This document shows positions 10,021-51,020 of a DNA stretch of 64,000 nt, piece by piece. The notes below the pieces were generated by a model. The model ran no database searches. It saw nothing but the letters and a program-made list of their open reading frames with translations, and had not been told where the DNA came from. Source of the DNA: Hemiscyllium ocellatum (taxonomy: Eukaryota); assembly GCF_020745735.1 (NCBI RefSeq), contig NW_026867529.1, forward strand, positions 62,001 to 126,000. Direction: 5' to 3'. A program made the translations under genes and the position numbers. Position 1 is the first letter of the stretch. Every line of letters begins with the position of its first letter.

Positions 10021-12190
10021 CAGAACATAGAACATAGAACAATACAGCACAGAACAGGCCCTTCGGCCCACGATGTTGTGCCGAACATCTGTCCTAGTTT
10101 AAGCACCCATGCATGTACCTATCCAATTGCCGCTTAAAGGTCGCCAATGATTCTGACTCTACCACTCCTACGGGCAGCGCATTCCATGCCCCCACCACTC
10201 TCTGGGTAAAGAACCCACCCCTGACAACTCCCCTATACCTTCCACCCTTCACCTTAAATTTATGTCCCCTTGTAACACTCTGTTGTACCCGGGGGAAAAG
10301 TTTCTGACTGTCTACTCTATCTATTCCTCTGATCATCTTATAAACCTCTATCAAGTCACCCCTCATCCTTCGCCGTTCCAATAAGAAAAGGCCGAGAACT
10401 CTCAACCTATCCTCGTACGACCTATTCTCCATTCCAGGCAACATCCTGGTAAATCTTCTCTGCACCCTCTCCAAAGCTTCCACATCTTTCCTAAAGTGAG
10501 GCAACCAGAACTGCACACAGTACTCCAAATGTGGCCTAACCAAAGTCCTGTACAGCTGCAACATCACTTCACGACTCTTGAATTCAATCCCTCTGCTAAT
10601 GAACGCTAATACACCATATGCCTTCTTACAAGCTCTATCCACCTGAGTGGCAACTTTCAAAGATCTATGTACATAGACCCCAAGATCCCTCTGTTCCTTC
10701 ACCTGACTAAGAACCCTACCGTTAACCCTGTATTCCGCATTCTTATTTGTTCTTCCAAAATGGACAACCTCACACTTGGCAGGGTTGAACTCCACCTGCC
10801 ACTCCTCAGCCCAGCTCTGCATCATATCTAAGTCCCTTTGCAGCCGACAACAGCCCTCCTCACTGTCCACAACTCCACCATCCTCACTGTCCACAACTCC
10901 ACCAATCTTCATATCATCTGCAAATTTACTGATTCCCTCATCCAAGTCATTAATAAAAATTACAAACAGCAGAGGACCCAGAACTGATCCCTGAAAAACT
11001 CCACTTGTAACTGGGCTCCAGGCTGAATATTTACCATCTACCACCACTCTCTGACTTCGACCGGGTTAGCCAGTTTTCTATCCAATTGGCCAAATTTCCC
11101 TCTATCCCATGCCTCCTGACTTTCCGCATAAGCCTACCATGGGGAAACTTATCAAATGCCTTACTAAAATCCATGTACACTACATTCACTGCTCTACCCT
11201 CATCCACATGCTTGGTCACCTCCTCAAAGAATTCAATAAGACTTGTAAGGCAAGACCTACCCTTCACAAATCCATGCTGGCTGTCCCTAATCAAGCAGTG
11301 TCTTTCCAGATACTCATAAATCCTATCCCTCAGTACCCTTTCCATTACTTTGCCTACCACAGAAGTAAGACTAACTGGCCTGTAATTCCCGGGGTTATCC
11401 CTATTCCCTTTTTTGAACCGGGGCACAACATTCGCTACTCTCCAGTCCCCTGGTACCACCCCTGTTGACAGTGAAGACGAAAAGATCATTGCCAACGGTA
11501 CTGCAATTTCCTCTCTTGCTTGCTACATAATCCTAGGATATATCTTGTCAGGCCCAGGGGACTTGTCTATCCTCAAGTTGTTCAAAATGTCCAACACATC
11601 TTCCTTCCTAACAAGTATCTCTTCTAGCTTACCAATCCATTTCACACTCTCCTCTTCAACAATACGGTCCCTCTCATTCGTAAATACTGAAGAAAAGTAC
11701 TCATTCAAGACCTCTCCTATCTCTTCCGACTCAATACACAATCTCCCACTACTGTCCTTGATCGGACCTACCCTCGTTCTCGTCATTCTTATGTTTCTCA
11801 CATACGCATAAAATGCCTTGGGGTTATCCTTGATCCTATCCGCCAAGGATTTTTCATGCCCTCTCTTAGCTCTCCTAATCCCTTTCTTCAGGTCCCTTCT
11901 GGCTATCCTGTATCCCTCCACTGCTCTGTCTGAACCCTGTTTCCTCAACCTTATGTAAGCCTCCTTCTTCCTCTTTACTAGACATTCAACCTCCCTTGTC
12001 AATCAAGGCTCCCTCACACGACCATTTCTTTCCTGCCTGATAGGTACATACATATCAAGGACACGTCGTATCTGCTCCTTGAAAAAGTTCCACATTTCCA
12101 CCACATCCTTCCCTGACAGCCTATGCTCCCAACTTATGCTCCTCAAATCCTGTCTTACAGCATCGTAATTTCCCTTCCCCCAATTGTATT
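10021..12190 (-). mobile_element. CR1 LINE, frameshifted ORF2
   Basis: ORFs 10094-11047, 11031-11495, 11523-12002 and 12003-12206 give successive RT parts (QHGF, QGSVLGP, FADD); tail CAGAACATAGAACATAGAAC at 10021. Confidence 0.92.
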
Positions 12191-13574: not shown

Positions 13575-16130
13575 ACATAGAACATTATGGTGCAGTACTG
13601 GCCCTTCGGCCCTTGATGTTGCACTGACCTGTGGAACTAATCTGAAGTCCATCTATCCTGCACTATTCCACTTTCATCCAGATGGTTATCCAATGCCCAT
13701 TCTAATGCCCTAAAGGTTGGCAAGTCTACTCCTATTGCAAGCAGTGTGTTTTACACCCCTACTCCTCTCTGAGTAAAGAAACTATCTCAGACATCTGTCC
13801 TATATCTATCACCCCCAATTTAAAGCTATTTCCCTTGTGCCAGCCATCACTATCTGAGAAGAAAAACTCTCACTGTACACTCTATCTAACCCTCTGATTA
13901 TCTTGTATGTCTCAATTAAGTCACCTCTCAACCTTCTCGCTAATGAAAACAGCTCAAGTACTTCAGCCTTTCCTCTTAAGACCTTCCCTCCATAACAAGC
14001 AACATCCTAGCAAAGTTTCTCTGCATCCTTTCCAAAATTCCCACGTCCTTCCTATAATGCGGTGACCAGAACTGTAAGTAATACTCGAAGTGCAGCCGCA
14101 CTAGAGTTTTGTACCGCTGCAGCACAACCTCATGACTCTGAAACTCCATCCCTCTACCAATTAAAGCTAACACACTGAGTGCCAACTTAACAACCCTATC
14201 AACCTGGGTGCCAACTTTCAGGGATCCATGTACATGGACACCGAGATCTATCTGCTCAGCTACACTACCAAGAATCTTACCATTAGCCCAGTACTCTGTT
14301 TTCCTGTTGTTCCTTCCAAAGTGAATCACCTCACGTTTTTGCATTAAGCTCAATATGCCACCTCAGCCCAGCTCTGCAGCTTACGTATGTCCCTCTGTAA
14401 CCTGCAACATCCTTTGGCACTGTCCACAACTCCATTGACCTTAGTGTCATCCATAAATTTACTAACCTATCCTTCTACACCTTCATCTAGGTCATTTATA
14501 AAAGCGACAAACAGCAGTGGCGGCAAAACAGATCCTTGCATTATAACACTGGTAATTGAACTCCAGGATGAACCTTTCCCATCAACCAACACCTTTCAGC
14601 TAGTCAATTTTCAGTCTTTCAGCTCGCCAATTTCTGATACAAACCATTAAATTTCCCTCGATTCCGTGCCTCGCTATTTTCTGCAATAGCATACCATGAG
14701 GATCCGTATCAAACGCCTTACTGAAAACCACATCAACCAACTTACCCTGATCCATCTGTTTGGTCACCATCTTAAAGCACTCAAGAAGATTTGTGAGCAC
14801 AATCTCCCCTTCACAAACCGTGTTGACTACCCCTAATCAACTTATATCTCTAGGTAATTATAAATCCTTTCTCTTCTGACTTTTTCCGACACTTTACCCA
14901 CAACTGAAGTAAGGCTGACTGATCTATAATTACCGGGGTTGACTCTATTCCCCTTCTTGAACAAGAGGGAGTTGTCCTCCAGTCTTCTGGCACTATTCCT
15001 GTAGACAATGACAACACAAAGATCAAAGCCAAAGGCTCTGCAATCTCCTCTCTGCCTTCCCAGAGAATCCTGGAATAAATCCCATCTGACCGAGGTGACT
15101 TATCTATTTTCACACTTTCCAAAATTGCTCACACCTCCTCTTTGTGAACTGAATTCCATCTCGTAGCCTGTTTCTCAGTATTCTCCTTGACAATATTGTC
15201 TTTTTCCAGTGTGAATACTGATGAGAAATATTCATTTAGCAATTCCCCTACCTCTTCAAACTCCACCCACAACTTCCAACTCCGGTTCTTGATTGGCCTT
15301 AATCTTTCTCCAGTCATTCTTTTATTCCTGATATACCCAGAGAACGCTTTAGAGGACACTGGTGGTTCTTAGCCTTCTCTTTAGGTCTTTTCTGGCTGAC
15401 TTGTAAATCTAAAGTGCCCTAAAGTGTCTCATCCTAATAGAAGCCTTTTTCTTCTTCTTGACAAGAGATTCAACCTTTTTAGAAAACTATAGCTCTATCG
15501 CTCGACAATTTCCTCCCTGCCTGACAGGCACATGCTTATCAAGGACACACAGTAGCTGTTCCTTGAAATAGCTTCACATTTCAACTGTGCCCAACCCCTG
15601 CAGTTTCCTTCCCTATCCTATGCATCCTAAATCTTGCCTAGTCGCATCATAATTGCCTGTCCTCCAGCAATAACTCTTACACTGCCGCATATACCTATCC
15701 CTTTCCATCACTAAAGTAAACATAACTCGAATTGTGGTCACTGTCACCAAAGTGCTCACCTACCTCCAAATCTAATACCTGGCTGGGTTCCTTACCCAGT
15801 ACCAAATCCAATGTCGTCTCGCCCCTTGTTGGCTTGTCTACATACTGTGTCAGGAAACCATCCTGTATACATTGGACAAAAACGGACCCATCTAAAGTAC
15901 TCGAGCTATTGTATTTCCAGTCAATATTTTTAAAGTTAAAATCCCCCGTAACAACAATCTTGTTACTCTTGCTGCTATCCAGAATTATCGTTGGTATCCT
16001 TTCCTCTACATCACTGGAGGCCTAGAGAAAACTCCCAACAGAGTGTCTTTTCCTTTATTGTTGCTTACCTCAGCTCGTGCTACCTCAGTAGTTGAGTCCT
16101 CAAATGTCCTTTCTGCCACCATCCTTGACT
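13575..16130 (-). mobile_element. Degraded CR1 LINE
   Basis: Fragmentary ORFs 13976-14353, 14600-14800, 14850-15122 and 15129-15359 match CR1 ORF2; GAACATAGAACAT tail near 13575. Boundaries approximate. Confidence 0.8.
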
Positions 16131-20114: not shown

Positions 20115-20749
20115 GTAAGTTTGATCCAATGTATGAACATGTTATGCTTCAAAATGTGTTCAGTCTCTTTCTGAACCTGTGCCACCCTTCAAAGGTTAAG
20201 TCCATAGGATGTTGCTTGATTGGAACAGCATTTCCTCAATCAATATTATGTGCAGTGAGATTAGTAATTCCCAGGTTATTCCCACATATCTCCCTATGTT
20301 AATTGTTATTAGGTCAATTAATAGGGATAACTATATGCTGTTCTATGAGCCTCATAGAAATCCCATTTAATGCTGGCCTGGACAAGACTGGTAAACTTAA
20401 ACTTGTGCTTATAGAGAAAGGACTGAGATCTTAACTGGCTCATTATCATCTAATGTATTGAGTTTAAACTTATGTCTATATCTAAATTCTTCAAGGCCTT
20501 GATCCATGCTGTCTCTTGTACCCCTTATATACACACTCTGTTCTTTGGTTCTCCGATTGCTTTTGTCTATGAGTATGGTCAAGCCCCCTTAATTAGCTGT
20601 ACTTTACTGTTAAACTTCCTTACATGCCCTCTGGTACTCATTCTCACTTTGAAAGCTTGCTTAAAAGCCGGTTTCATGTCATTGGTCCTAACTCTTCTGA
20701 TACATGCCAACAACCTTCTCCTGTTTGGCGTTCGGTGCATCCTTTTCCA

Positions 20750-21520
20750 GTTTGGAAGGTCAAACCCGAATGCTGAATATAGGGTTAAAGGCAGGATTCT
20801 TGGCAGTGTGGAGGAACAGAGGGATCTGGGTGTGCAAGTACATAGATCCCTCAAAGTTGCCACCCAAGTAGATAGGGTTGTTAAGAAAGCAGATGGTGTT
20901 TAGACTTTCATTTACAAGGGAATTGAGTTTGAAAGCAGTGAGGTTTTGCTACAGCTCTACAAGTCCCTGGTGAGACCACACCTGGAATATTGTGTCCAGT
21001 TCTGGTCGCCCTGCTATAAGAAATAGATAGAGGCTTTGGAGAGGGTGCAAAGAAGGTTTACCAGGATGCTGCCTGGACTGGAGGGCTTGCCTTATGAAGA
21101 AAGGTTGAATAAGCTCAGACTTTTCTCTCTGGAGAGAGGGAGGAAGAGAGGAGACCTGATTGAGGTATACAAAATAATGAGAGGAATAGATAAAATCAAA
21201 AGCTAGAGAATTTTCCCCAGGGCAGGATTGACTGTTACGAGGGGGTCATAGTTTTAAGATATAAGGAGAAAGGTATAGAGGAGACGTTAGAGGTGGGTTC
21301 TTTATGCAGAGTGTTGTGAATGCATGGAAGGCTTTGCCAGCAGTGGTGGTGGAAGCAGAGTCATTAGGGACATTTAAGTGACTGCTGGACATGCAAATGT
21401 TTGGCAGTGAGTTGAGAGGTGTGTGGGTTGTTATTATATTTTACATTAGGATTAGACCTCGGCACACTGTCGTGGGCCAAAGGGCCTGTTCTGTGCTGTG
21501 TTTTTCTATGTTCTATGTTA
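20750..21520 (+). mobile_element. 5'-truncated CR1 LINE
   Basis: NPNAEYRVKGRILGSVEEQRDLGVQVHRSLKVATQVDRVVKKA followed by 3' UTR and TTCTATG tail. Confidence 0.85.
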
Positions 21521-27582: not shown

Positions 27583-27707
27583 CTTCACCAGAGTGACGGC
27601 AGCGCTGTAGAAAATACTCAGGAAGAACAAGGTGATGAACGTGGAAGCAGTTGTCCAGATGTTGCTGTTATTGTCATAGTCTTCAATCCAAGTGCGATTT
27701 ATTGAAT
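27583..27707 (-). CDS. IGHM: Transmembrane exon TM1
   Basis: Acceptor TTCATAG, donor AAG|GTGAGA. (D)SINRTWIEDYDNNSNIWTTASTFITLFFLSIFYSAAVTLVK contains the conserved antigen-receptor TM motif. Confidence 0.94.
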
Positions 27708-29561: not shown

Positions 29562-32006
29562 ATGATATCAGGTATTCGAATAACAGTAGAGGAAAGTATT
29601 GCGAGGATGATTCAGGAGAAGAGTGAAAGTAACAGGGTGGTTGTTATGGGGGACTTTAACATCCCAGATATTGACTGGGAAAGCTATAGCTCGAGTTCGT
29701 TAGATGGGTCGGTGTTTGTCCAATGTGTGGAGGAGGGTTTCCTGACACAATATGTAGACAGGCCAACAAGAGGTGAGGCCATACTGGATTTGGTTCTAGG
29801 TAATGAACCAGGCCAGGTGTTAGACTTGGACGTAGGTGAGCACTTCGGGGACAGTGACCACAACTCGGTGACTTTTACTTTAGTGATGGAGAGGGATAAG
29901 TGTGCACTGCAGGGCAAGAGTTATAGCTGGGGGCAGGGAAATTATGATGAGGTGAGGCATGACTTAGGATGCGTGGATTGGAAAAATAGGCTTCAAGAGA
30001 AGAACACAAATGATATGTGGAGATTGTTCAAAGAACAGCTATTGGGTGTCCTGGATAAGTATGTACCAGTCCGGCAGGGAGTAAAGGGTCTTGTGAGGGA
30101 GCCGTGGTTTAATAAGGAATTGGAATCCCTTGTGAAAGGGAAGAGGGCGGCCTATGTAAAGATGAGGCGTGAAGGTTCAGTTGGGGCGATAGAGAGTTAT
30201 AAGGTAGCCAGGAAGGATCTAAAGAGAGAGCTAAGAGCAGCGAGAAGGGGACATGAAAAGTCCTTAGTTGGTAGGATTAGGGAAAACCCAAAGGCTTTCT
30301 ATAGGTATGTCATGAATAAAAGGATGACTAGGGTAGGTATCGGTCCAGTCAAGGATAGTAGTGGGAAGTTGTGCGTGGAGGCGGAGGAGATTGGAGAGAC
30401 ACTAAATCAATACTTTTCGTCAGTATTCACTCAGGAACAGGACACTATTGCTGATGTGAATACTGAGTCACAAGTGATTAGAATGGATGGCCTTGAGGTA
30501 TGTAGGGAAGAGGTCTGGGGAATACTGGAAAGGATGAAAATAGATAAGTCCCTTGGGCCTGATGGCATTTATCCTAGTATCCTCTGGGAAGCTACGGAGG
30601 AGATAGCAGAGCCATTGGCCTTGATTTTTATGTCGTCATTGTCTACGGGAATAGTGCCAGAAGACTGGAGGATAGCGAATGTGGTCCCCTTGTTCAAGAA
30701 GGGGAGTAGGGATAGCCCGAGTAACTATAGGCCAGTGAGTCTCACTTCTGTTGTGGGCAAAGTCTTAGAGAGAATTGTAAGTGATAGGATTTATGAACAT
30801 CTGGATAGGAATAACGTGATCAAGGATAGTCAGCATGGTTTTGTGAAGGGCAGGTCGTGCCTCACAAACCTTATTGAGTTCTTTGAGAAGGTGACTAAGG
30901 AGGTGGACGAGGGTAAAGCAGTAGATGTGGTGTATATGGATTTTAGCAAGGCGTTCGATAAGGTACCCCATGGTAGGCTACTGCAAAAACTACGGAGGTA
31001 TGGCATTGAGGGTGCATTAGAGGTTTGGATTAGGAATTGGCTGGCTGGAAGGAGACAGAGGGTAGTAGTTGATGGTATAGGTTCATCTTGGAGTGCAGTT
31101 ACTAGCGGTGTTCCACAAGGATCTGTTTTGGGACCATTGCTGTTTGTCATCTTTATAAATGATCTAGAGGAGGGGCTTGAAAGCTGGGTGAGCAAGTTTG
31201 CGGATGACACGAAAGTCGGTGGTGTTGTGGACAGCAAAGAAGGATGTGGCAGGTTACAGCGGGATATAGATAAGTTGCAGAGCTGGGCAGAAAGGTGGCA
31301 AATGGAGTTCAATGTAGCTAAATGTGAAGTCATTCACTTTGGTAGGAGTAACAAGAAGATGGATTACTGGGCTAATGGTAGGCTACTTGGTAGTGTGGAT
31401 GAGCAGAGGGATCTTGGTGTCCATATACACAGATCTCTGAAAGTTGCCACCCAGGTAAATAGAGCTGTGAAGAAGGCATATGGTGTACTGGGCTTTATTG
31501 GTAGAGGAATTGAGTTCCAGAGTCCTGAGGTCATGTTGCAGTTGTATAAGACTCTGGTGCGGCCTCATCTGGAGTATTGTGTGCAGTTTTGGTCGCCATA
31601 CTGTAGGAAGGATGTGGAGGCATTGGAACGAGTGCAGAGGAGGTTTACCAGGATGTTGCCTGGCATGGTAGGAAGATCTTATGAGGAAAGGCTGAGGCAC
31701 TTGAGGCTGTTCTCATTGGAGAAAAGAAGGTTTAGGGGAGATTTGATAGAGGTGTACAAGATGATTAGGGGTTTAGATAGGGTAGACACTGAGAACCTTT
31801 TTCTGTTAATGGAGTCAGCTGTCACTAGGGGACACAGTTTTAAATTAAGGGGTGGTAGGTATAGGACAGATGTTAGGGGTAGATACTTTACTCAGCGGAT
31901 TGTGAGTTCATGGAATGCCCTGCCAGTAGCAGTGGTGAACTCTCCCTCTTTATGGTCATTTAAGAGGGCATTGGATAAGCATATGGAGGTTATTGGGCTA
32001 ATGTAG
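29562..32006 (+). CDS. CR1 LINE ORF2, 5'-truncated, uninterrupted (partial AP endonuclease plus reverse transcriptase)
   Basis: 814-codon ORF with GDFN..PTRGEAILDLVL..SDH (APE C-terminal part), QHGF, PQGSVLGP and FADD (RT). Confidence 0.92.
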   Translation: MISGIRITVEESIARMIQEKSESNRVVVMGDFNIPDIDWESYSSSSLDGSVFVQCVEEGFLTQYVDRPTRGEAILDLVLGNEPGQVLDLDVGEHFGDSDHNSVTFTLVMERDKCALQGKSYSWGQGNYDEVRHDLGCVDWKNRLQEKNTNDMWRLFKEQLLGVLDKYVPVRQGVKGLVREPWFNKELESLVKGKRAAYVKMRREGSVGAIESYKVARKDLKRELRAARRGHEKSLVGRIRENPKAFYRYVMNKRMTRVGIGPVKDSSGKLCVEAEEIGETLNQYFSSVFTQEQDTIADVNTESQVIRMDGLEVCREEVWGILERMKIDKSLGPDGIYPSILWEATEEIAEPLALIFMSSLSTGIVPEDWRIANVVPLFKKGSRDSPSNYRPVSLTSVVGKVLERIVSDRIYEHLDRNNVIKDSQHGFVKGRSCLTNLIEFFEKVTKEVDEGKAVDVVYMDFSKAFDKVPHGRLLQKLRRYGIEGALEVWIRNWLAGRRQRVVVDGIGSSWSAVTSGVPQGSVLGPLLFVIFINDLEEGLESWVSKFADDTKVGGVVDSKEGCGRLQRDIDKLQSWAERWQMEFNVAKCEVIHFGRSNKKMDYWANGRLLGSVDEQRDLGVHIHRSLKVATQVNRAVKKAYGVLGFIGRGIEFQSPEVMLQLYKTLVRPHLEYCVQFWSPYCRKDVEALERVQRRFTRMLPGMVGRSYEERLRHLRLFSLEKRRFRGDLIEVYKMIRGLDRVDTENLFLLMESAVTRGHSFKLRGGRYRTDVRGRYFTQRIVSSWNALPVAVVNSPSLWSFKRALDKHMEVIGLM

Positions 32007-32959: not shown

Positions 32960-33351
32960 TTATTGACATGAATTAACAGTGTCCATCAGTGCAAGTGAAA
33001 TGTTTACGAAACTCGGTTTACCGCTGGATTTATCGACTGTTCTGTTGATGATCTTCAATGGAATCGCTTCATGTCCCACCACACAGGAGTAAGAAGCACC
33101 GCTGGCCCACTCCTCCGCTGTAATGGATAACAGGCTGTAGATGAAGAAGGAGGTGTTGTCACTCTCCGCCATCACCTCGGTGTTCTTGTAGTTACTGGGA
33201 TTCACCTGCTTGTCATTGTTTGTCCACTTGACGAAGATCTCTCGGGGGGAGAAACCTCTCACTAAACAGGTGAGGGAGAGAAACCTCTGAGCGGAGATTT
33301 CTTCTGTTGGTGGCAGGAGGACCGACACTGATGGCTCCAGCGGATTAATCA
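32960..33351 (-). CDS. IGHM: Cmu4 exon plus secretory tailpiece
   Basis: Acceptor [23 protein letters not shown]...[23 protein letters not shown] then [20 protein letters not shown] (NIS glycosylation site, penultimate Cys). Internal donor G|GTAAAC at 33021 for the membrane form. Confidence 0.95.
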
Positions 33352-33806: not shown

Positions 33807-34115
33807 CTTTCTCCTTGTGGATGGAGTCTCTCAGCGGAGTCGGTAGATTCTGATGGTACACCACACATTCAAAAGTAACGCCACTCAGCCAGGCTTCAGT
33901 AGAAATGTCTAATTTGCTGATCACGCTGTCGGGATTCTGTCCAGGCTGGTCAGCAATCTCGGATTTCAGAGGCTTCTTTTCTTGTTTCCAGGTCACGTTG
34001 ACTCCAGAAGGAAGATTGGACACAACGCAGGTTAACGTCACCGTCGCCTCCAGTAAGACTTGTTCTACTGGCGGTGGGAGGATTTTAACGGTGTTAGGGT
34101 GGCACTCGGTATCTT
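33807..34115 (-). CDS. IGHM: Cmu3 exon
   Basis: Acceptor TTCATAG, donor G|[28 protein letters not shown]...[22 protein letters not shown] matches shark mu CH3. Confidence 0.94.
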
Positions 34116-36085: not shown

Positions 36086-36397
36086 CCTGGAGTGCGGTGA
36101 TGTTTTTACTTTGAACGTTCTCTTCATGAGTGACCTGGCAGGTATAGACTGCGCTGTTGTACCATTCACCATAAGGGACCATCAGCCGACTCGTCACCGA
36201 GAAGTTCCCGTTCGCCTCACACACGGGAGACGTGAAGAAGCCAGAATCCAAGAGTCGGCCATTTTTCAACCAACTCACGGAGATTGACTTCGGATGGAAA
36301 TCGATGATTGAACAGACGACAGTTGCAAACTTGCTGCTTGCGATTTCTTCACTGGAGCTCACAGTTAGGAGAAGGGTTGGTGGGAGAGGACCTGTAC
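36086..36397 (-). CDS. IGHM: Cmu2 exon
   Basis: Acceptor CTAAAG, donor G|[39 protein letters not shown]...YTCQVTH matches shark mu CH2 motifs. Confidence 0.94.
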
Positions 36398-39497: not shown

Positions 39498-39806
39498 CAC
39501 ATGGCATTTCTTTGCTCTTGTGTGAGTGTGACCCGCTGTGTTCAACCTCACAGTAGATTTTGCTGGGGCAATCTACCGCTGACCCGGGCAGGGTTAACTG
39601 GCTGCTCAGGGTGTATGTTCCCTTCTTGTTTCTCACTGATGGGTAAGTCTTCAATCCATCCGTGATTAGCTCCCCACCTTTCTTCCAGGTTACCTTGGTG
39701 ACGTCAGGAAAATAGTCCATCACCAAACAACCAAAGATTGTCGAATCGGTGTTGTGCTCCTCACAGGAGGAGACCAGGCCATAAAGCGTGGGGGGAGATG
39801 GTGTCT
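39498..39806 (-). CDS. IGHM: Cmu1 exon
   Basis: Acceptor TTGTAG, donor G|GTACGT. (E)[42 protein letters not shown]...[20 protein letters not shown] is a C1-set domain like shark mu CH1. Confidence 0.93.
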
Positions 39807-40830: not shown

Positions 40831-41309
40831 TCAGGTCCAGTGAGCCTTCCTCACTTATCACTGCAAGGCAGAATGTTCTCTCTGGGAGGAAGGTCACTGC
40901 AGCAGCAGCAGCACAGGCAGGAGCTGAGCACTGGGACGGGGAGGATGGCTGTCACGGCTGAACTCAGGCCAATTGTCTGGAAGTTGAAACATCTCATTTA
41001 CAATGATCTGAATTCTGGAGGCCTCTGAAAAATGGAGGACCATTAAGGTTCAGAGACTTTGGAGTGTTACAGCTGAGTATTTACTTAAATATGATTTGAG
41101 AAATGAACAAGTAATCTTTAACTTTAATAACTATCAAACTGATCCGCAGTTCACCACCAAACCTCATCTCTCAGACTAACCACTGCACTTACTCTGCCTA
41201 GACCTAAATTTCCACTCACATTGACAAACCCTACCCTGCTATACACCCATTCATGCCCGGAACACACAAGCCCTATCACACAAAACACATCCAAGGCAAT
41301 CCATATTGG

Positions 41310-41985
41310 TAGTGTAGCTGAGCAGAGAGATCTCGGTGCCCATGTACATAGATCCCTAAAAGTTGCCAGCCAGTTTGATAGAGTTGTTAAGAAGGCATAC
41401 TTTGTGCTGGCTTTCATCGATAGAGGGACTGAGTTTCAGAACCATGAGGTTAGGTTGCAGCTGTACAAAGCTCTGGTGTGGCTGCACTTGGAGTATTGTG
41501 TACTGTTCTGGTCACCACATCATAGAGAGGATGTGGAAGCTTTGGAAGAGTTCAGAGGAGGTTTCCCAGGATGTTGTTTGGTATGGCGGGAAGGTTTAAT
41601 GAGGAAAGGATGAGGGTCTTGAGGCTGTTTTTGTTTGAGAGAAGAAGGTTAAGAGGTGACTTAATTGAGACATAAAAGATAAACAGAGGGTGGACAGTGA
41701 AAGTTTTTTTCCTTGAATTTGTGATGGCTAGCAGGAGAGGACATAGATGACAGATGTCAGAGGTTGTTTCTTTACTCAGAGAGTAGTAGGGCCATCGAAC
41801 GCACTGCCTGCAACAATAGTACACTCGCCAACTTTAAGGGCATTTAAAAGGTCATTGGATAAACATATGGATGAAAATGGAATAGTGTAGGATAGATAGG
41901 CTTCAGATTGGTTCCACAGGTCAGCGCAACATTGAGGGCTGAAGAGCCTGTACTGCACTGTAATGTTCTATATTCTATATTCCAG
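41310..41985 (+). mobile_element. CR1 3' fragment
   Basis: GSVAEQRDLGAHVHRSLKVA... followed by 3' UTR and TTCTATA tail. Confidence 0.8.
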
Positions 41986-49041: not shown

Positions 49042-49422
49042 AGAATCCAATCAACTCAATTCAACAGAATCAAGGAAAATAAAATCAGAATCCAATCAAC
49101 TCAAAACAACAGATTTGAATGAAACATAATCAGAATCCAAACAATTCAATTCAACAGAATCAAATAAAACAAATTCCAAAAACCAATCAACACAATTCAA
49201 CAAAACCAAATAAAAACAAAGTCAGAATCCAATCAACACAGTTCAACCGGATCAACTAAAACAAAGCCAAAATCCAATCAACTCAATTCAACAGAATCAA
49301 GTAAAAACAAAGTCAGAATCCAATCAACACAGTTCAACCGAATCAACTAAAACAAAGCCAAAACCAATCAACTCAATTCAACAGAATCAAGTAAAACAAA
49401 CTCAGAATCTAATCAACAGAAT
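49042..49422. repeat. Tandem array of about 8.4 x 45-bp units
   Basis: Units like AGAATCCAATCAACTCAATTCAACAGAATCAAGTAAAAACAAAGTC start at 49042, 49087, 49132, 49178, 49224, 49269, 49315, 49360 and 49404 (partial). Confidence 0.92.
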
Positions 49423-49934
49423 GCAATATAGCACCTCAAGAAACTTTTATGTCAGTTTCTAACCTGCTTGTCATCAACAAAATTAACAAAATAAATGAGA
49501 TAATATAATCATGGTAAGAACATATATTCAGGAAATGAATCATGATATTTTAGCATATTTTAGTCATGTTTGGTAATATCTTTGAACATCTTTGAATTCT
49601 TAGGGTTTGTTGTTGATAATAAAACTCACAGTCAGGGTGTCACTGACATTAAACATTATTTATAGCTGACTAATTAAGAGACATGAGGTGTTTCAAGTAA
49701 CCCAGCCACATAGAATGTCCATCTGATTAAAAAAAAGAGATACACCCAGCACCTGACTCCATCATCACCATTTTAACTATTTGCTGACCCTTAACTGGTC
49801 TACAATCAGTCTGAACAAAAATCAATCTGAACCAAACCAAACTCAGCACAGAATCTGAGTTTCATTTAATTCAGAAATTAGTCACATGAATAGGAAGTTT
49901 TTAAAAAGTCACTAAGAAAGTTCAAAGTTCTTAC

Positions 49935-49982
49935 CTGAAGTCACTGTTACCATGGTCCCTTGGCCCCAGTACTCAATATAGT
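49935..49982 (-). CDS. IGHJ: JH segment (YIEYWGQGTMVTVTS)
   Basis: WGxG motif, abuts the RSS heptamer, donor TCAG|GTAAGA at 49934. Confidence 0.96.
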
Positions 49983-50021
49983 CACAGTGTTACATTCTCT
50001 GGACTGGGTCGCACAATAACT
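49983..50021 (-). promoter_or_regulatory. 23-spacer recombination signal sequence 5' of JH
   Basis: Read away from J on the plus strand: heptamer CACAGTG (49983-49989), 23-nt spacer, nonamer ACAATAACT (50013-50021). Confidence 0.9.
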
Positions 50022-50348
50022 AGCTCTGCATAAAACAAATCAAAAATCTACCATCATTTTAAATGTTCAGAACCACAGGCAAAATAAAGTCTCGATAAAT
50101 CTTCATCACATAATTGCGCTAGTGAATTCTGATCATTCTTGATAAATTTTAATACTGTTTTATACTTCACAGAGTAACACATGAGCTGATTCTCAAAATC
50201 TCCAACTGGTATATCAATAATTACCCAACCCTTTTACAAATTAAATAGTGATACTGGCATAAATCCCCACAGAACTAATACTGCGCTGCAAGTTAAGACG
50301 GTTTGTAGAAGTAATCACTGACTAGTTTCAAACAATGGAGGCTGAATA

Positions 50349-50376
50349 GGTTTTTGTATTGATCATAATTGCAGTG
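50349..50376 (-). promoter_or_regulatory. 12-spacer recombination signal sequence 3' of D
   Basis: Heptamer CACTGCA (50376-50370), 12-nt spacer, consensus nonamer ACAAAAACC (50357-50349). Confidence 0.9.
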
Positions 50377-50398
50377 TCACCCCAGTACCAACTGTACG
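50377..50398 (-). other. IGHD: Joined D-region remnant (probably D1+D2): CGTACAGTTGGTACTGGGGTGA
   Basis: Lies between the V end (TGTGCAACAGA) and a 12-RSS. TACAGT and TACTGGG cores resemble shark D1 and D2 sequences as I recall them; the D1/D2 split is inference. Confidence 0.75.
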
Positions 50399-50702
50399 TC
50401 TGTTGCACAGTAATAGATGGCGGTGTCTTCGATCTTCAGGTTCCCCAGGTTCAACGAGAAAATGTTGTTTGAAGTGTCTTTGGACGCAGTAAATCGACCC
50501 TGAATCGCTGGTGCATAGTAATTACTGGATGAACTATAGTAGCTAACCAGCCACTCCAGACCCTGGCCGGGAACCTGGCGGACCCAGCTCATGTAGTACC
50601 TGCTGAGATTGAACCCGCTGGTTTTACAGGTCAGTTTCAGGCTGCCGTCGGGACGGCCAGTCTCTGCCTCTGGCTGGGTCAAAACAATCTCCGAGTGGAC
50701 AC
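50377..50702 (-). CDS. IGHV: VH exon (IgM-type) already fused to D-like sequence, ending in TGA
   Basis: (C)[107 protein letters not shown]. Both V-domain Cys, WVRQ and YYC intact; framework resembles elasmobranch IgM VH. Confidence 0.95.
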
Positions 50703-50830: not shown

Positions 50831-50879
50831 ATGATAAGAAAGTCAGTAATAAACTGAGAAAAATTGTCGACACAATCAT
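50831..50879 (-). CDS. IGHV: IgM heavy chain leader exon (MIVSTIFLSLLLTFLS + first base of Cys)
   Basis: ATG at 50879, hydrophobic signal peptide, phase-1 donor T|GTGAGT at 50830; 128-nt intron to acceptor TTTAAAG at 50703. Confidence 0.93.
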
Positions 50880-50965
50880 TCTGATAACTTCTGGGAAGCG
50901 GTTCTGTCAAGACCTTTCTAAACAAAGCCGATCCCGGAGTGTTGAATTACGGTCCAGTGCCTAGG

Positions 50966-51020
50966 ATTTATATGGCCATCGGAAAGGGCAGGCTTACAGC
51001 TTCCGCCTGTTGGTTTCCTG
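50966..51020 (-). promoter_or_regulatory. VH promoter: TATA box and two GGAA (ETS-like) cores
   Basis: TATAAAT at 50972-50966, about 90 nt upstream of the ATG; GGCGGAAGC and CAGGAAAC just upstream. No perfect octamer seen in 50880-52000. Confidence 0.6.

Follow-up and report, generated by a model that had tools for sequence, protein, structure and literature searches.

A probable germline VD1D2-J fusion in an IgM heavy-chain mini-cluster of Hemiscyllium ocellatum, read against split clusters of Chiloscyllium punctatum

Does an IgM heavy-chain locus of Hemiscyllium ocellatum carry a V segment that was fused to its D segments in the inherited genome, and could such a locus still produce a heavy chain? 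Pre-joined shark antibody genes are the main natural evidence for RAG in germ cells reshaping antigen-receptor loci, and they are candidates for hard-wired early-life antibodies. Many IgH clusters of sharks and skates are joined in the germline either partly (VD-J, VD-DJ) or fully (VDJ) (PMC5192425, PMC4279169), and the joining in germline-joined shark clusters has been attributed to germ-cell RAG activity (PMC5192425, PMC4279169, PMC2193156). We analysed a 64-kb stretch of contig NW_026867529.1 (the whole of it is called the window below), in which the gene lies on the minus strand, and compared it with four loci of Chiloscyllium punctatum: L001 (BEZZ01001741.1), L002 (BEZZ01001580.1), L003 (BEZZ01002062.1) and L004 (BEZZ01002017.1). 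The V-D-J part of the window contains the following features:

50831..50879, minus strand: leader exon, with the ATG at 50879, MIVSTIFLSLLLTFLS plus the first base of a Cys codon, and a GTGAGT donor
50398..50702, minus strand: VH exon, preceded by an AG acceptor and closing with the V coding end ...TGTGCAACAGAC, which is untrimmed
50397..50397, minus strand: extra G at the V-D1 joint, read against the V ends and D1 of L002 and L004
50387..50396, minus strand: D1-derived segment TACAGTTGGT, 5' end trimmed by 4-5 nt and 3' end untrimmed, 9/10 against the L002 D1
50377..50386, minus strand: D2-derived segment ACTGGGGTGA, 5' end trimmed by 5 nt and 3' end intact, ending in an in-frame TGA, 10/10 against the L004 D2
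50349..50376, minus strand: D2 3' 12-RSS (CACTGCA, 12-nt spacer, ACAAAAACC)
50022..50348, minus strand: D2-J intersegmental spacer, 327 nt, lost in the remaining join
49983..50021, minus strand: JH 23-RSS (AGTTATTGT, 23-nt spacer, CACTGTG), 0 mismatches in the RSS scan
49935..49982, minus strand: JH coding segment, encoding YIEYWGQGTMVTVTS, with a GTAAG donor after 49935 (GT at 49934)

An earlier note on this DNA had described a V that runs straight into D, followed by a 12-RSS and, about 330 nt away, a JH with a 23-RSS; direct reading of the minus strand agrees with this to the base, the spacer being 327 nt long. The leader is the same as the leader of C. punctatum P0001 and is separated from V by an intron of 128 nt, and the VH exon encodes a V-set domain (Pfam, E=3.7e-17) with the conserved Cys, WVRQ and YYC all in place. 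The D-derived stretch after V comprises 21 nt (1 G, 10 nt of D1 and 10 nt of the D2 3' end), and translation in the V frame across V-D1-D2 yields 10 residues and then a stop (TGA). The 12-RSS shows 0 mismatches to the pattern CAC-N16-nonamer and is the sole such site in the 64-kb window by RSS scan; its heptamer, CACTGCA, is off the consensus at 3 positions, yet it is the usual D2 heptamer of the family. The same scan detected no RSS between V and the 12-RSS, the V coding sequence being contiguous with the D-derived nucleotides, and motif scans, RSS scans and direct reading of the whole 64-kb window gave no V 23-RSS, no 5' D RSS, no second V and no second J. The absence of a V 23-RSS, a 5' D RSS and a V-D spacer had also been claimed before, and it is borne out here, 728 nt of the split cluster L004 being missing. 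That the joined appearance is an artefact of mis-reading was considered and rejected, with no other V, D or J and no convincing RSS in the window. In the assembled genome, V, D1 and D2 are fused and J is unjoined.

To identify D1 and D2, alignment to unjoined clusters had been proposed, and L002 and L004 served this purpose. L004 is a split cluster with a V and its 23-RSS, a D1 (ATGCGACAGCGGGT) with a 22-spacer 3' RSS and a D2 (ATATAACTGGGGTGA) whose 3' RSS is CACTGCA-ATTATGATCAAT-ACAAAAACC, after which come a spacer of ~330 nt, a 23-RSS and JH. L002 is split as well, with a 23-RSS at its V and a 22-spacer RSS at its D1 (ATACTACAGTGGGT); the 3' part of its D2 and the RSS of that D2 are missing. 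These two split clusters are the nearest to the window across V, J and flanks (89-93% identity), as compared with 85% for L001 and 79% for L003, both joined, in V; the window cluster thus derives, in joined form, from a split-type family. A blastn comparison with L004 shows that homology ends at window position 50398 and restarts at 50386, and that between these points the window has 11 nt as against 728 nt in L004, which comprise the V-RSS, a spacer, D1, a spacer and the 5' part of D2. The window 12-RSS is identical to the L004 D2 3' RSS at 28 of 28 positions and the next 60 nt are 100% identical, so the likeness between the window and L004 reflects homology and not chance. The D2-J spacer is 87-100% identical to that of L004 in sliding windows, the JH 23-RSS differs from that of L004 at one position, which lies in the spacer, and the 12-RSS is also conserved in L001 and L003.

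The 11 nt and the sequence next to it can be apportioned between two D segments. The last 10 nt before the heptamer match the D2 3' end of L004 at 10 of 10 positions, and the D1 part matches the L002 D1 at 9 of 10, the references being germline D segments of C. punctatum, which is another species, and not of this genome. A D1 match as good as this was reached by 47 of 200,000 random and 116 of 200,000 shuffled 11-mer inserts, which gives a simulation p of about 2e-4 to 6e-4. One may argue that the nucleotides after V are a single D with non-templated bases and contain no D1, which would make the locus a VD-J; the insert is short, and its D1-like part has one mismatch to the C. punctatum D1. 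However, the 9/10 match to D1, which simulated inserts hardly ever reach, lies directly 5' of the 10/10 match to the D2 3' end, and since the window lacks ATATA, the 5' part of D2, the 11 nt cannot come from D2 alone. Moreover, the deletion edges in the window fall at coding/RSS borders and neither joint has an N region, which is why we read the locus as VD1D2-J and not as a single-D VD-J. We regard the single-D reading, which the earlier note had named as the outcome that would overturn its V-D1-D2 fusion, as scarcely credible; both D segments contribute.

The VD1D2-J reading suggests how the locus may have arisen. The window very probably holds a VD1D2-J IgM mini-cluster that was generated by two RAG-type deletional joins in an ancestral germline and has been inherited since. 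V would have been joined to D1, and D1 to D2, by RAG-type deletion in the germline of an ancestor, and the putative fossil coding joints would consist of an untrimmed V, 1-2 palindromic nucleotides, a D1 that lost its first 4-5 nt and kept its 3' end intact, and a D2 that lost its first 5 nt, with no N nucleotides. A P nucleotide derived from the V end may account for the G at 50397 (GAC|G), and GT is likewise palindromic with that end. We infer that this animal carries the locus in its germline, that RAG made the joints, and that the gene rearranges and is expressed. Blastn detected neither of the excised spacers, V-D1 or D1-D2, in the rest of the window, where reinsertion could have placed them.

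Joints of this kind have been studied in other sharks. For nurse shark light chains, Lee et al. 2000 (PMC2193156) concluded that joined genes derive from split genes through germ-cell recombination of a RAG-like kind that left few traces of TdT, and the joints in the window fit this picture and are unusually easy to read. For the heavy chain of the horned shark, the joints could not be dissected, the joined and the split genes being too divergent (Lee et al. 2000, PMC2193156). The window differs in this respect, as a split relative at about 90-93% identity allows V, P, D1 and D2 to be assigned and both heavy-chain joints to be read base by base.

A joined V in an assembly could also come from a lymphoid cell. 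In nurse shark thymocytes, whose IgH rearrangements are mostly incomplete, VDD-J ('2R') is often met as a somatic intermediate (Malecek et al. 2008, PMC2435157), and both its segment configuration and its remaining RSS pair are identical to those of the window. The joined form might thus be such an intermediate, or an artefact of assembly, with a normal V-D1-D2-J in the germline. The somatic nurse shark joints, however, occur on clusters that are split in erythrocyte DNA, and each is unique to its cell, so that a consensus assembly, which is what the window comes from, should favour the shared unrearranged form. A thymic VDD-J clone carries an N region between V and D1 or between D1 and D2 (PMC2435157), whereas neither joint in the window has one, which is the condition of the germline joints (PMC2193156). 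The window is also free of gaps, and the genomes of horned shark and skate carry pre-joined clusters. Finally, two VDD-J clusters of the same design occur in the independent C. punctatum assembly. Taken together, a somatic or artefactual origin appears very improbable.

The two C. punctatum clusters, L001 and L003, have a V that enters ~20 nt of D-derived sequence, then a CACTGCA-12-nonamer RSS and, across a homologous spacer of ~330 nt, a 23-RSS with its JH. Their V frames are open, and they are annotated solely as hypothetical V proteins. Because the VDD-J layout recurs in an independent assembly, the layout is probably heritable in the lineage. L001 and L003 are alike to the window in layout, but they are not its orthologues (V identity of 85% and 79%, respectively). 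An orthologue of the exact window locus, joined or unjoined, was not found in the protein search, whose 31 hits reached 83% at best. L001 (11669-12120) is VDD-J too: its 12-RSS is that of the window, its junction, TGTACAAGAG-CAGTGGGGAGCTGGATTGT, differs, and its gene model P0004, annotated as a hypothetical protein, reads through the RSS into the spacer.

It is evident that the junction of L003 (4444-4510), GAC-G-TACGTGGG-ACTGGAGTGC, has the same breakpoints as the junction at window positions 50377-50409, GAC-G-TACAGTTGGT-ACTGGGGTGA. Three breakpoints are common to both, although L003 belongs to a divergent family: an untrimmed V ending in GAC plus one G, a D1 that starts from TAC and a D2 that starts from ACTGG. 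These shared breakpoints could be explained by shared descent with later homogenisation, or by recurrent canonical joining. In sliding-window comparisons the window keeps its affinity to the split L004 as far as the joint on either side and shows no local likeness to L003; as the window is nearest to L004 on both sides, common descent of the L003 and window joints is unsupported. There is a small chance that the VDD joint is no random accident at all, being either a very old cassette kept by selection, or spread among clusters through gene conversion with homogenisation of its flanks, or the product of a strongly canonical, TdT-free joining in germ cells. The 'canonical junction' receptors of the mammalian fetus offer a parallel for the latter. 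Either scenario, if true, would mean a selected, semi-invariant, innate-like antibody family across hemiscylliid-type sharks. Two other protein gene models, P0009 of Rhincodon typus and P0027 of Scyliorhinus torazame, run from YYCAR through CDR3 straight into WGQ(G/E)TMVTVT, which suggests that the assemblies of whale shark and cloudy catshark contain fully VDJ-joined germline clusters.

Irregularities are seen in the split loci too. L002 (11270-11320) has lost ~200 bp with the 3' part of D2 and its 12-RSS, so that the 22/23-RSS of D1 faces the 23-RSS of J; in L004 (4380-4480), V has a frameshift and its heptamer is mutated to CGCAGCG. Since these nearest split relatives in C. punctatum are defective, the subfamily to which L002, L004 and the window belong may be decaying.

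Whether the joined locus could still work depends on the segments beyond the joint, which are as follows:

50880..51020, minus strand: proximal promoter block, a candidate, with TATA-like CATATAAAT at 50974-50966, conserved in 5/5 clusters
39498..39806, minus strand: Cmu1 exon, Pfam C1-set, open frame, AG/GT boundaries
36086..36397, minus strand: Cmu2 exon, Pfam C1-set, open frame, AG/GT boundaries
33807..34115, minus strand: Cmu3 exon, Pfam C1-set, open frame, AG/GT boundaries
32960..33351, minus strand: Cmu4 exon with the secretory tail and then a stop, Pfam C1-set, open frame
27583..27707, minus strand: TM1 exon (...NIWTTASTFITLFFLSIFYSAAVTLVK), a typical mu transmembrane sequence, flanked by an AG acceptor and a GTGAGA donor

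The Cmu exons begin ~10 kb downstream of JH on the same strand, and their junctions are phase-1. The leader, V, J, Cmu1-4, the secretory tail and TM1 contain no frameshift, stop or broken splice site. All C and TM exons had been claimed to be intact; this stands for Cmu1-4 and TM1, which are open and have good splice sites, and does not extend to the tiny TM2 exon, which was not located in the window. With one split-leader VH, one JH and one set of Cmu1-4 and TM1 in one orientation within 64 kb, the gene is an elasmobranch cluster-type IgM heavy-chain gene. Upstream of the leader, the block of ~140 nt (CAGGAAACCAAC...CATATAAAT...) hardly varies among five clusters, joined and split alike, from two species and is a candidate core promoter. 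A motif search near and upstream of VH gave no canonical octamer (ATGCAAAT).

The remaining RSS pair, the D2 3' 12-RSS and the JH 23-RSS, is 12/23-compatible, and both members are conserved relative to L004. As it is the single compatible pair left, one RAG cut-and-join would suffice for a VDJ exon, in agreement with what the earlier note had proposed. In a B cell, D2 would be brought to JH by one RAG deletion that removes 394 nt (50376-49983). Nine or ten residues at the start of CDR3 would then be fixed, together with their reading frame, and diversity would be confined to the D2-J joint; that the first part of CDR3 is fixed had been stated before, and the set V-D1-D2 frame with its CATDVQLV stem accords with it. 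Because the last in-frame codon of D2 is TGA, at least one D2 base must be trimmed. When trimming of 0-10 nt at each end without additions was enumerated, 36 of the 121 combinations were in frame and free of stops, with about one-third expected, and the TGA at the D2 end stops solely those joins that keep the whole D2 end. It is predicted from these sequences that the cluster can make heavy chains with a CDR3 that varies only at the D2-J joint. By analogy with other pre-joined shark genes, the window gene may rearrange, be expressed and have a role in early life, and it might give the fast, semi-invariant IgM that the earlier note had proposed.

The joined cluster might nonetheless be heritable and functionless, a decaying by-product of stray RAG activity in germ cells that has ceased to rearrange or is silent, and no selected semi-invariant antibody gene. 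The stop codon in frame at the end of D2 (TGA) would agree with such a relic, although trimming of a single base removes it. The CATDVQLV stem occurs in none of the 31 database protein hits, the closest split paralogues in C. punctatum are defective, and a LINE has inserted into the Cmu4-TM1 intron. Besides, the nurse shark is, according to review, without canonical germline-joined IgM (PMC5192425/PMC4279169). Against these points, the leader, V, J, Cmu1-4 and TM1 are undamaged in frame and splice sites, and the conservation of the promoter block and of both RSS equals that of functional clusters. The framework dN/dS against paralogues is 0.3-0.55, which is weak evidence of constraint and is not lineage-specific. 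We consider a functionless relic possible but rather unlikely.

Among the closest known systems is that of the horned shark (Heterodontus francisci), in which 'VD and VDD joined' genes were described by Kokubu et al. 1988, as cited in PMC2193156, PMC5192425 and PMC4279169. In both the horned shark clusters and the window, a cluster-type IgM has its V fused to one or more D segments in the inherited genome, with J split off behind an RSS and one join left; the two differ in species and in V subfamily, and the horned shark V is 77% identical in amino acids to the V of the window, the cloudy catshark V 75% and the C. punctatum VH, the best protein match, 83%. The nurse shark IgM1gj is fully VDJ-joined, lacks Cmu2 and has a restricted CDR3 (Rumfelt et al. 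2001, as presented in PMC5192425 and PMC4279169), and those two sources treat it as a model for the early-life expression of pre-joined genes. IgM1gj and the window share a germline-joined IgM heavy chain with a restricted CDR3, but in the window D2 has yet to be joined to J and none of the four Cmu exons is missing; with J unjoined and Cmu2 present and open, it is not of the IgM1gj type. A germline-joined IgM V was also obtained from the spotted ratfish (Hydrolagus colliei) by Rast et al. 1998, as named in PMC12227049. The ratfish, of the holocephalan lineage, resembles the window in having a pre-joined heavy-chain V in a cartilaginous fish. That ratfish gene reportedly has a VDD-J layout. 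In C. plagiosum, 37 IgM clusters have been counted, the joining state of which is not described in that account (PMC8692893).

The class of pre-joined shark antibody genes is thus already described, as had been said, by the VD and VDD genes of the horned shark and by reviews that list VD-J, VD-DJ and VDJ, and the window cluster is a clean new example of it. The window cluster, L001 and L003 appear undescribed in the literature searched, the first of these as the earlier note had thought possible. The current picture of shark Ig genetics is unchanged by the window cluster, which offers a CDR3 stem, CATDVQLV..., for searches of repertoire data.

Repeats of two kinds occur around the exons. A LINE-type reverse-transcriptase ORF of 814 aa lies at 29562-32006 on the plus strand inside the Cmu4-TM1 intron, and related RT fragments are located at 10094-12002 (minus), 13976-14353 (minus), 20472-20903 (plus) and 41221-41613 (plus); strong local swings of GC skew at 10-16 kb and 28-32 kb coincide with RT elements. 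A 45-bp tandem array of ~8 copies, A/C-rich on the plus strand, spans window positions 49042-49426, ~0.5 kb downstream of JH. Equivalent 45-bp arrays are found at the same place in L001 (12671-12935), L002 (12089-12374) and L004 (6178-6462), joined and split clusters alike, and the array is thus conserved in the J-C intron of this lineage.
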